This document shows, piece after piece, positions 30,704-34,911 of a stretch of DNA of 64,000 nt (position 1 is its first letter; each line of letters begins with the position of its first letter). The notes beneath the pieces were generated by a model. It saw nothing but the letters and a program-made list of their open reading frames with translations. It had not been told where the DNA came from and did not search any database. The DNA is from Adineta vaga (Eukaryota; Animalia; Rotifera), in NCBI GenBank assembly GCA_021613535.1, contig CP075496.1:4526001-4590000 (forward strand). The letters are read 5' to 3'. The translations under genes and the position numbers were made by a program.

Positions 30704-33700
30704 ATGATTCTCATACGATCCTTTCTTGTGATATTCTTTATAAAAAGTATGTCATTAATTTTTGTTTTCTTTGTTAAAACTAATAAAATATTTGAAAATT
30801 TAGTTTATTTTCTTCTTGCTGCTGAACAAAAATTCAAAATTGTATGTTACTTCTCCAATTGGGGTAGGTTATTTATTTCTATTTTGATTTCAATATCAAC
30901 GATACTTCATAGCGGTAAAACGTCCCGGTGGAGGTTCAATGACTCCTGAAGATATTGATCCTTGTTTATGTACACATGTTATATATGCTTTTTCGGAAAT
31001 GGATAATAATCAGTTGACGCCAATGGAAAAACATGATTTGAAAGATGGAAATCAAGCAGGTAGATTCGAAGAGTGATCATATATGATGGATGCTTGTTTA
31101 TATTTACAAGGTTTCTTTGAACGATTCAATGCTTGGAAGAGTGTGAACAAGAATTTAAGAACTCTGCTAGCTGTTGGTGGTTGGGTATGATATTTTTGAG
31201 AAGTGAACATTGAGTAGAATTTGCCTGATATTTGTTTAGGATATGGGTATGAAAGATTTTGCAGGTAAAATACAACTTGTAATCGTTTGTGGTAACTAAT
31301 AGGAATATATTGATTTGATAGGTATTGTTAAATCGGAAAAGACAATGGTAAAATTTGCTGAAGCAGCAATTAAATATTTACGAAAGCATAAATTTGATGG
31401 TCTTGATCTTGGTAAGTGATTGATCAGAAAGTTTAGTAATCAAGAAACTTTATTCATCTTTATTTAGACTTTGAATATCCTGGTAAGAATTTGTCAATCG
31501 ACAAAGCATCTACTATGTTTTGAATAAAATAAATAGGAGTGGATTGGCGAGATAGTCCGAAAGAAGATAAGCAGAAATTTACAAGAATGTGTGAAGTAAA
31601 TATAACAACTGAAATAGAAATGTTTAGTAATTGAATTTTTCAATCAGATTCTATATGAAATGTTCGAAAAAGAAGCAGAAAAAAGTGGAAATGAACGTCT
31701 TCTTCTTACTGCAGCTGTAGCAGCTGCGAAAATTAACATCGATAAAGCATATGAAGTGGATAAACTTGTTCCGTAAGTACAAATATTCCTACTGAAGAGA
31801 ATATCAAAGTTATTTTCATTCATGACTTTTAGAGTGATCGATTGGTATAAGAAAATGAATATCAAAAAGTTTAAAATGATTTTATTTTTTGTTATAAAAA
31901 AGGTTTAATTTAATGACTTATGATTTTCATGGATCATGGGATCAAAATCGTGCTCATCATTCATCATTAAATAGCAAAGATAATGAAAAAGATGATACAA
32001 TGTATAGTGTATGTATTAGAAAACATTTAAATTCAATGATATTCATTCGAGATTTATTCTAGGATTTTGCTGTAAAATATTTTCAAAAATTAGGTATGCC
32101 TGCGAATAAAATGATGTTAGGTATAGGTACATATGGACGAGGTGATACACCAGCTATGCCATATACTGGATTTAAAGGTGAAAGTGGTTTTGTTGCGTAT
32201 TATGAAGTAAAATAATCTTGAATTCTTTTCTTCATTTTTCATATTCGATGATCTTTTCTTTTCAACAAAAAAGAGTTGTATTCAAATTGTTTGTGAAAAT
32301 ATGAAAGAAACATGGGATGCTAAACAACTTGTACCATATATTGCTGGTCCATATAATCAACCAAAAGCAGGTGTAGAAAATGTTCGAAGTATCAAATATA
32401 AAGTAAGAAAGACGATGAGAAATGTCAAGATGTGTTAGAAAAGATGTTTTGTTTTTTCGAGGCTAATTATATCAAACAAAATAATTTGGGAGGTGCAATG
32501 ATTTGGACATTGGATATGGATGATTTTCGTGGTCAGTTCTGTTGTCAAGGAAAATTTCCTTTGATTAAAACGATAAAAGCTGTTCTACATGGACAATTGA
32601 AATTATTACCAAAGGAAAAAATCTGTTCAACTTGTCCAACCAAAGAATATAAAGGTAGTAAATTCATTGTGATGTAACTAAACTTGAATTGAAAAGGAAT
32701 GTATATGCAGATTTTAAAGCTAATTCACAATCACAACCACAAACTACTGAAAAGCCAACAAAAAAACCAAAGAAATCGAAACGTGATGCAGAAGGACCCA
32801 GTAAAGATAACTTTGATAAAAGAATAGTAATGGACAGCATATTTTCGTTTTGTTTATTTAGCACCCGAAGATGTTTGTGAAGAGTTAAAAGATGGACAAT
32901 GGCCAGATCCATCTGATTGCAAGAGTTATTTTCTATGTCGTGGTGTAGGTAGTCAATGGGGAGAACAAAAACGTGAAGTTTGTTATGCCGGTAAGACTAT
33001 CAACCTGAACATCGGATGCAGAAGAATAGCGTTAGGAGTATAGGATTGATAAAAAGGTGTAAGATGCGACTCTAGAAAGTTATTATTTTTCGTCAGAGAA
33101 ATTAATTAAAAAAAAACGATCTTTGTTCTAGGTTCTTATTTTGATCCTAATGAAAAAACATGTAAATGGGTTGGTGCTGATAAGGTTTGTTTATTTCGAT
33201 CGTTCTTCGAGTTACATCTGTAAATTTATTCTTTCAATTTCTTCAGATTAATTGCGAAGAACTAGTTGAAGGATATGAAAATCCTGTTGCTGGTGTAACA
33301 GGAGCACCAGAAGATGGTGAAGATGAGGGTGAAGATGAAGATATAACAGGTGATATGGGTACAGTATCACAAAAAAAGAGTAAATCATCGTCATCATTAT
33401 CAAGTAAATCCATGTCAATTCTGAGTCGATCAATATCTGAATTTGATACATGTGCACCTGAGAAATCTGTTGAATTTGATCCTGTTCAAGGTAATTGATA
33501 ATTTTCCTAGTTTTTTTATTTTTCATGGCTCGCTTCATCTTGTATAGCATTCTATAGGTATGCTTTGTTACTCTTGCGAAAGTCAGAAGGAGAACAGCGA
33601 ATGTCAAATCAATCCCAATCAGACAACGACGATGATGTGCGACTCGAAACAACAAATTTGTTACACCAAAAAAATCACAAACGGCGTCGGTAAGCAACTC

Positions 33701-34066
33701 AGATGATATAAGTTCTCAGTTTCGTTTATTGTATGAAAAAAATAATTCTTAGGAAAACTAGTACAGCTCATTCGTGGATGCATAATACCACCATCATCGA
33801 CGGGCAATCTCACTCAACAAACACCATGTCAGTCAAACAAAGTCGAAGGAAAAACTACATGCATGAAATATTGTCTCACCAGCTTGTGCAACAATCAAGA
33901 CATAAGGTTAATTTTAATTGAATGAAGCAAAATTTCGAATATTTTATTCTTTTCTTTTTTTTTCAACAGTGGCGCTCCGGCACTAACAATCAATCGATTG
34001 ACATCCGTCATTTATTACCTTTTGGCTCTTGTACTAATACTCCTATCTACACAAATTTGTTATTGA
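30704..34066 (+). CDS. GH18 chitinase with CBM14 chitin-binding domain, acidic linker, Ly6/uPAR three-finger domain and GPI-type C-terminal signal (many exons)
   Basis: Signal peptide; KIVCYFSNWA, DIDPCLCTHVIYAF, KTLLAVGGW, FDGLDLDFEYP, NLMTYDFHGSW, LGGAMIWTLDMDDF. CBM14-like CEELKDGQWPDPSDCKSYFLC...CYAGSYFDPNEKTCKW. Ten-Cys LCYSC...RGC...CLTSLCN, then a hydrophobic tail. Confidence 0.88.
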
Positions 34067-34911
34067 TCATAACATTTTTATCAGCTATTCTACTGCATAT
34101 ATAAACGATTGAACGAGAACAAAATTTTGTTATCTGTTTTTCTCTTTCACATCTATCTATCTTTTTCTTGTTTAAAAATAAAATTATCATCTATGTCAGA
34201 TGAAATTATACTGCGATAGAAAAAATTTTTTGAAAAGACTTGTACAATCTATCACATTTCTTCTTTCAAATGTCAAATAGAAATGTCATTTATCTAAAGA
34301 AACTCATTAACTTTTGTTATTTTATCTTCTTTCATTAACAGATTTTTTTGCGTTTCGATTCTTTTTTCTATTCAATGTAGTTAGATGCCATGTTCTTCTC
34401 TTGGTTAGTGAACATTGCTTATGTCAGGAGATTCAATGGTAACTAAGTCTTTCTTTTTTTTTCGTTTTTATTCACTAGTATAACAGAAATCTTGATAAAA
34501 AAGTGCAAGAAGAAAAAAAAGAACGAAACATGTCCTTTACTTGTATAAATACATATGTGTGCGTGCACAAGCCTGTAAACGGCTGATGATTACCTTTTGG
34601 CCTTGCTAGTATTGTAAGACACTTCACCTCTCAAACTTTTCTTCTAGAGAAGAAGAAGAAAAAGAAAAAGAAGAAACTAAAGGCACTCTTTGAATAAAAA
34701 AAATGTCTTATACAATGTCACATACTTTTCTCTCAAATGCATCTGGATTTCTTCGTTGACAATGATCTGATGTTTTCTTTATGATACTTTCATTTTTTCT
34801 CTTATGCAAACATTTTTATTGTTATACATCGTATGTTTTATTTATTATAGATACTTCATGTATCTAGTACGTTGATAATAATTATATTTAGTAGAAGAAT
34901 AAAATATCACC

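Follow-up and report, generated by a model that had tools for sequence, protein, structure and literature searches.

A bdelloid rotifer gene that appears to join an animal-type chitinase to a Ly6/uPAR domain, with a second open reading frame behind a conserved tandem splice acceptor

Animal chitinases in which a GH18 catalytic domain is followed by a C-terminal CBM14, including acidic mammalian chitinase (AMCase), chitotriosidase and the insect enzymes, are alike in having a signal peptide, the GH18 motif DxxDxDxE, a linker and a six-cysteine CBM14, with which they stop; they are secreted. Proteins with a single Ly6/uPAR (LU) domain held by glycosylphosphatidylinositol (GPI), such as CD59, the Ly6 family, Quiver/Sleepless and Lypd6, are small and stand-alone, with a signal exon of their own, a ten-cysteine pattern ending in Cys-Asn, a three-finger fold, phase-1 introns (the inner one at loop 2), and small residues followed by a hydrophobic tail. 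Here we describe a gene on the forward strand of a 64,000-nt stretch of the Adineta vaga genome (GenBank assembly GCA_021613535.1, contig CP075496.1, positions 4,526,001 to 4,590,000; herein the window, to whose first letter all positions refer) that shares the features of both groups. Where the chitinases of the first group stop, it goes on with an acidic/Ser linker, then the LU domain and its hydrophobic tail; compared with the single-LU proteins, its LU domain lacks a signal exon and stands behind a 575-residue enzyme, its Cys 8 and Cys 9 are three residues apart rather than adjacent, and an extra phase-2 intron separates the tail from it. Each half is standard, the head as an animal chitinase and the tail as a GPI-type LU module, and what is new is that they are combined. 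The exons encoding the module are, in addition, open in a second frame that is reached through an alternative splice acceptor.

The LU domain has been described as "probably not a bona fide mobile module", occurring almost only alone, as LU repeats or in TGF-beta-type receptors, and as a "proto-module" at most (PMC6600238). A survey published in 2026 and covering 387 invertebrate genomes reports Kunitz, C1q, Ig, MAM, thioredoxin, permease and other LU partners, none of them a glycosidase, and gives only "LU, RK" for the single rotifer surveyed (PMC13719153). An earlier note on this DNA had known of no characterised GH18 chitinase with a Ly6 domain, and this holds as far as these two LU surveys go (PMC6600238, PMC13719153); literature searches on chitinases with Ly6 or GPI, on bdelloid chitinases and on GPI-anchored chitinases likewise turned up no account of the GH18-CBM14-LU architecture.

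The gene occupies 30704-34066 (+ strand) and consists of 20 exons encoding a product of 702 aa; the coordinate-checked translation is unbroken, with one stop at 34064-34066. Its introns are GT-AG throughout and 49-141 nt long, in a window that is AT-rich (30% GC). Domain searches of the window gene were made exon by exon, the joined LU domain was searched on the Adineta steineri protein P0003, and the spliced window model was assembled from coordinates for frame checks, ratios of nonsynonymous to synonymous divergence (dN/dS) and permutation tests. It is highly likely that this one gene encodes, in order, a signal peptide, GH18, a basic linker, CBM14, an acidic/Ser-rich linker, LU and a hydrophobic GPI-type tail, because RNA junctions, conservation in six loci, purifying selection on the LU exons (dN/dS 0.23), a match to the QVR profile above threshold in an ortholog and a three-finger fold agree on it; they bear out the order GH18-CBM14-acidic linker-LU-hydrophobic tail that the earlier note had read from the sequence. 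The features are as follows:

30704-30823, + strand: signal peptide, hydrophobic, ~21 aa, split by intron 1 (translation, read by eye)
30824-32654, + strand: GH18 catalytic domain of the animal AMCase/chitotriosidase type, exons 2-13 (PF00704 matches, solved relatives)
31396-31482, + strand: catalytic motif DGLDLDFEYP (DxxDxDxE), intact, split by intron 6 (translation)
32711-32800, + strand: linker exon 14, basic, Thr/Pro/Lys-rich, with KKSKR at 32770-32784 (translation)
32862-33255, + strand: CBM14 (peritrophin-A, PF01607), 6 Cys, exons 15-16 plus 9 nt at the start of exon 17
33256-33490, + strand: acidic (D/E run), then Ser/Lys-rich linker ending EFDPVQ, the rest of exon 17
33491-33557, + strand: intron 17, 67 nt, phase 1, with a tandem acceptor (AGs at 33546-33547, upstream, and 33556-33557, canonical)
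33558-33892, + strand: LU three-finger domain, 10 Cys, ending Cys-Asn, exons 18-19
33905-34066, + strand: GPI-type C-terminal signal, 2 nt at the end of exon 19 plus exon 20 (hydropathy, by eye)
33548-34104, + strand: alternative frame with exon 18 starting at 33548, 143 codons after ..DPVQ, stop at 34102-34104 in the last exon
34177-34182, + strand: polyadenylation signal AATAAA (an RNA contig, X1 record 4, ends at 34210)
30704-30746, 30804-30863, 30913-31059, 31111-31184, 31240-31264, + strand: exons 1-5 of the chitinase-LU gene
31322-31411, 31468-31482, 31537-31595, 31648-31772, 31903-32008, + strand: exons 6-10
32063-32206, 32274-32402, 32462-32654, 32711-32800, 32862-32990, + strand: exons 11-15
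33132-33184, 33247-33490, 33558-33689, 33753-33906, 33970-34066, + strand: exons 16-20

The critical joint lies between exons 17 and 18, where the donor CAAG|GTAATT (33490/33491) and the acceptor CTATAG|GT (33557/33558) give a phase-1, in-frame splice in the window; with 67 nt, intron 17 has a length usual for the gene. Of four runs compared with the gene, X5 and X6 have spliced contigs and X1 has them in part; these derive from RNA and cover many of the splice junctions. The contigs of X2 contain introns, derive from DNA and give no transcript evidence. One contig of 576 nt (X5 record 15; 0-3 differences) runs from exon 17 to exon 18 at 33558, through exons 19 and 20 and into the 3′ untranslated region (UTR) to 34149; its first 108 letters were assigned to 33381-33488 via depth (3.94 in the bin 33394-33520, that is, 5.26 × 95/127). 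X1 record 3 spans 33256-33490 unbroken and stops exactly at 33490, and X5 record 14 extends from exon 13 through exons 14-16 to ~33348 (depth accounting). CBM14 is thus chained to the LU exons, because these three contigs overlap in exon 17. A further contig of 582 nt without differences (X6 record 18) joins 33490 to 33548, using the AG 10 nt upstream of the canonical acceptor; X1 record 4 begins at 33556, from which the acceptor choice is not distinguishable, and reaches 34210. Every contig that reaches exon 18 enters it from exon 17 alone. The splice from the linker exon to the Ly6 exon that the earlier note had proposed is therefore present in the sequence, and RNA contigs join there.

The transcript of a second copy of the gene on contig C1 appears as a more abundant, ~89%-identical series of contigs, with the canonical LU joint and a loose end ..EFDPVQ before 33556; its exon 1-exon 2 junction appears as a loose end in X6. 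The earlier note had also drawn attention to a stop in intron 17 at 33496-33498, and had suggested that intron retention could yield a secreted isoform. The stop exists, and the isoform is unsupported: none of the RNA contigs retains intron 17, P0005 (from another species) reads through, and the intron of the C1 copy has no such stop. The DNA contigs of X2, which is labelled as a different organism (B), are near-identical to the gene, with 0-1 differences in some 151-nt contigs; this reflects either a close relative or a matter of labelling or contamination.

Six loci were compared: the window, the C1 copy (an ohnolog, L005) and four other bdelloid loci (L006-L009, of which L007 and L008 are metagenome-derived). 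In the genome of 100.8 Mb and six contigs, exon 18 and exon 19 have a single further match each, on C1. The ohnolog keeps all 20 exons with their boundaries, at 83% protein identity and a synonymous divergence (dS) of 0.79; its indels are multiples of three, and all ten LU cysteines are present. Both ohnologs carry the fusion, which is therefore older than their divergence. Between the two copies dN/dS is 0.04 for GH18, 0.03 for CBM14, 0.23 for LU (dS 0.75) and ~1 for the hydrophobic tail, and the LU exons are under purifying selection. The architecture and every splice site are kept in the C1 ohnolog and in the four other bdelloid loci, and the junction frame is kept in all six, with indels only in multiples of three; at L007, L008 and L009 the GH18, CBM14, linker, LU and tail exons follow one another in the same order on one strand. 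A search of exon 18 against 1.84 billion representative proteins gave nine matches, seven of them bdelloid fragments or prokaryote-style open reading frame (ORF) calls running across introns; none of the nine was a full-length protein (~700 aa), and the length window of the protein search did not extend to full-length fusions. The A. steineri entry CAF1489957.1 (P0003, "unnamed protein product") is a spliced model with CBM14, linker, LU, tail and an identical junction, which ends at a contig end and is hence partial. Upstream of the chitinase on the metagenome contig L007 lies a PRMT-like ORF (PF22528; L007:1103-1531).

Seven exons match the GH18 profile PF00704 collinearly (profile positions 18-48, 51-74, 84-111, 134-169, 176-201, 206-256 and 299-317), scoring 15-26 bits each and thus singly under the cut-off of 29.6 bits. 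Among solved structures, the GH18 exons have their best relatives in acidic mammalian chitinase, chitotriosidase and the chitinases of insects, with E values as low as 2e-13 for an exon of 64 aa. The catalytic Glu codon (31473-31475) is carried by micro-exon 7, of only 15 nt (31468-31482), and this exon, the motif and the splice sites are kept in the C1 copy, L007 and L008. Judged from its sequence, the head is predicted to be a catalytically competent animal-type chitinase. The C1 copy and P0003 share the KKPKKSKRD of the basic linker without change; KKSKR, at which the earlier note suggested that the catalytic domain might be released, is a candidate cleavage site. Exon 15 alone scores 21.6 bits against CBM_14 (cut-off 22.1), and the ortholog P0003 passes the cut-off with 32.1 bits. 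The acidic/Ser linker, which had no Pfam match in the exon-level search, differs in length between copies by multiples of 3. It holds a lone cysteine (Cys 563, 33433-33435, ..EFDTC..) just ahead of the LU domain, which belongs to neither the CBM14 nor the LU framework and is kept in the C1 copy and A. steineri; this residue may be unpaired or may link two chains through a disulfide. Abundant transcripts of distant GH18 paralogs align to the gene only at the conserved motifs 31905-31939 and 32464-32500, with 414 other letters between (X1 record 2) and a depth at this joint of 345 in X5 and 199 in X6; other chitinases of the animal are expressed far more strongly than the chitinase-LU gene.

The ten cysteines of the LU domain lie at domain positions 3, 6, 15, 27, 34, 53, 69, 80, 84 and 89, the last followed by Asn, and all are kept in the aligned bdelloid sequences. 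Exon 18 alone has weak matches to DUF753, UPAR_LY6, QVR and Toxin_TOLIP (E 0.005-0.03; 16.8-18 bits); exon 19 and the tail alone have no Pfam match. The joined orthologous domain of A. steineri (P0003:172-275) matches QVR (PF17064) over its full length with 28.9 bits (cut-off 27.3); the whole of P0003 scores 24.7 bits against QVR, and its LU domain 26.4 bits against UPAR_LY6_2 (cut-off 31.5). An AlphaFold2 (AF2) model of this domain, based on a bdelloid alignment, has six strands followed by a tail helix, at a mean pLDDT of 66. Its best 50 matches in the Protein Data Bank (PDB) are all three-finger proteins (Foldseek E from 2.6e-3; TM-score up to 0.6 by target), among them uPAR, TGF-beta RII, C4.4A, GPIHBP1, Lypd6/6b, activin receptors, Lynx1, PSCA and a snake toxin. 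With the QVR score and this fold in the ortholog, the ten-cysteine Ly6/uPAR domain of Quiver type recognized in the earlier note is supported. As a rule, LU genes have one phase-1 intron ahead of the domain and another within it, where it falls at the loop 2 tip (PMC6600238). The rotifer gene follows this rule: introns 17 and 18 are each of phase 1, and intron 18 falls between model strands 36-44 and 49-57. Elsewhere in the genome there are at least 21 other QVR-type LU matches (e.g., C4:5130396-5130662 and C1:7677613-7677879), mostly single open frames and several at matching positions on paired chromosomes.

Beyond the domain, the tail starts with the small residues S-G-A; 11 residues of spacer, 14 hydrophobic residues and five uncharged ones (TQICY) lead from there to the stop. 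By eye, the layout is common to all six loci, with small residues 5-6 positions after the last Cys-Asn and a spacer of ~10, while the sequence drifts. From this layout the tail is probably a true GPI anchor signal. The hydrophobic run could instead be a membrane-spanning or retention segment, which would give a type-I-like anchored or intracellular-membrane chitinase; we hold this to be possible but doubtful. The tail forms one long helix in the AF2 model, and the insect LU protein TcRtv, which has a predicted GPI signal, was not released by phosphatidylinositol-specific phospholipase C (PMC3561106), a warning that such predictions can fail. On the other hand, the run is only ~14 residues long and lies within six residues of the C terminus, the last residues being uncharged; S-G-A or S-D-G-A placed 5-6 residues after the last Cys-Asn, with ~10 residues of spacer, is how GPI-anchored LU proteins are usually built (PMC6600238); and the tail evolves near-neutrally yet keeps its hydrophobicity, as cleaved signals do.

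A second possibility, which we advance with similar reserve and by analogy, is that LU works together with the enzyme and is more than a stalk; it would bind chitin or a chitin-organising protein, as has been proposed for insect Retroactive, or act with the acidic stretch as a capture module like that of GPIHBP1. The dN/dS of 0.23 implies constraint beyond the cysteine framework; Retroactive is an LU protein linked to the organisation of chitin and its protection from chitinases (PMC3561106); and GPIHBP1, one of the fold matches of the LU model, combines an acidic disordered stretch, LU and GPI, and holds an enzyme at the cell surface (PMC6600238). Sequence kinship to Retroactive or GPIHBP1, however, does not go beyond the family, and the alternative isoform lacks LU while keeping the rest.

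That isoform arises from the tandem acceptor, which, like the second open frame, is absent from the earlier note. The two AGs are exactly 10 nt apart in six of six loci, although the remainder of intron 17 has diverged. The last ~25 nt of the intron (a cttcatc-like stretch, then the two AGs) are alike across the loci, and the introns otherwise differ, even in GC; the conserved end may hold a branch point that sets up competition between the acceptors. The predicted product of splicing at 33548, of 718 aa, has its first 575 residues in common with the main isoform, lacks the LU domain and gains a basic, polar tail that ends in a hydrophobic run; the frame for it is open through exons 18, 19 and 20. 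Its stop being in the last exon, the mRNA should escape nonsense-mediated decay.

The openness of this frame is confined to the last three exons. In the coding sequence of the window it meets 75 stops in the upstream 571 codons (one per 7.6) and none thereafter, as it does in the C1 copy; the other alternative frame has eight stops over the same exons. Across the six loci the second frame is stop-free over 127-130 codons in every case. When synonymous codons were permuted inside the region, 4.7-7.9 stops arose on average, with a probability of zero stops between 2e-5 and 2.4e-3 per locus, and codons drawn from the rest of the gene gave zero stops in 0 of 200,000 trials. GC content at third codon positions (GC3) climbs from 0.17 to 0.41 exactly over these exons. 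All six second frames begin AFYRYA, pass the main stop by 11-19 codons and finish hydrophobic. We conclude that the second frame is probably functional, and that overlapping frames very probably provide the protein with two alternative C termini, the translation of the second being predicted. Our reading is that selection acts on the openness, length and hydrophobic end of the second frame, and not on most of its sequence.

The +10 acceptor might be splicing noise from two close AGs past one branch point, with a second frame that is not usefully translated. This is unlikely, though several observations fit it and also weigh against the reading preferred here: pieces of the second frame have no Pfam match, its dN/dS is 0.4-1.1, main-frame dS over the last three exons is not lowered, and the +10 junction occurs in one contig only, as each acceptor form was seen in a single contig of one run and the contigs give no ratios. 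Noise does not readily account for the total lack of stops in six of six loci beside one stop per 7.6 codons upstream and eight in the other alternative frame, nor for the permutation probabilities, which were obtained with the region's own codons. It likewise fits poorly with the GC3 step over the same exons, the fixed spacing of the AGs in diverged introns, a frame that stays open 11-19 codons into the main 3′ UTR and ends hydrophobic at every locus, and a stop in the last exon. The LU fusion itself has points to be set against it: the whole mRNA is spanned by no single contig, so that the GH18-LU link consists of contigs overlapping within exon 17; the LU exons of the window, searched apart, stay below the Pfam thresholds; and both the match at threshold and the fold were obtained on the ortholog of A. 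steineri (62-86% identical), from a model of moderate confidence.

That the Ly6 exons form a separate downstream gene, with the chitinase ending at the intron stop, is very improbable and was rejected: the stop does lie two codons past the donor, and exon 18 does open with a Met codon at which prokaryote-style ORFs start (P0001, P0002, P0010), but the ORF from this Met has no signal peptide, the contigs reaching exon 18 all come from exon 17, the A. steineri model joins both parts, and the junction frame is kept in six loci with indels in multiples of three, unlike the intron stop, which is not conserved.

On balance we lean towards the last three exons being a conserved dual-coding cassette, in which a choice between acceptors 10 nt apart swaps LU-GPI for a basic, differently anchored tail, both products being made and selected across bdelloids, and LU having been shuffled onto an enzyme. 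In the model that we consider most likely, the chitinase would be held at the outer face of the plasma membrane with the GPI-type signal as its anchor, much like the cell-surface protein for degrading or sensing chitin that the earlier note had put forward, and a flexible linker would let the GH18-CBM14 head reach chitin near the cell; trophi, egg shell, and ingested or fungal chitin are candidate substrates. LU would serve as a membrane-proximal module, possibly protein-binding or regulatory. The LU-GPI part may once have been a stand-alone LU gene, captured without its signal exon, a reading suggested by the family's intron plan, which it retains. Either splice choice might still deliver a membrane-held enzyme, which is one way to explain the constrained hydrophobic end.

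A conserved, expressed GH18-CBM14-LU fusion is a clear case of exon shuffling of LU onto an enzyme, and with it animals would gain a predicted membrane-tethered chitinase such as has until now been described for fungi. Because a tandem acceptor of 10-nt spacing gives access to it and all loci examined keep it open, the overlapping frame makes a compact candidate example of dual coding in an animal gene. Both the LU fusion and the second frame are overlooked by ORF callers and by public annotation ("unnamed protein product", CBM_14 only).

Among described systems, GPIHBP1 shares with the rotifer protein an acidic disordered stretch, LU and GPI, and places a hydrolase at the cell surface (PMC6600238); its enzyme, lipoprotein lipase, is bound non-covalently and the system is confined to vertebrates, whereas the rotifer enzyme is part of the same chain, so the likeness is one of layout only. 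Insect Retroactive (Rtv) has an LU domain and a C-terminal hydrophobic segment predicted to direct GPI attachment, and is tied to chitin and chitinases (PMC3561106). Rtv is a stand-alone protein of 150 residues that helps to protect chitin, whereas the rotifer LU domain is fused to a degrading enzyme; the likeness is of theme, not orthology. The GPI-anchored GH18 chitinases of fungi (Aspergillus, Candida, Neurospora) are tethered to the surface by a GPI signal, as in the model proposed here, but are not known to carry LU or CBM14 and belong to another GH18 subgroup. For the overlapping frames, the parallels are CDKN2A (INK4a/ARF) and GNAS (XLas/ALEX), where alternative splicing brings common exons into either of two frames, each of which evolution has kept open. 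The rotifer switch differs from these in being a 10-nt tandem acceptor within one gene, with the first 575 residues common to both products and the translation of the second frame putative.

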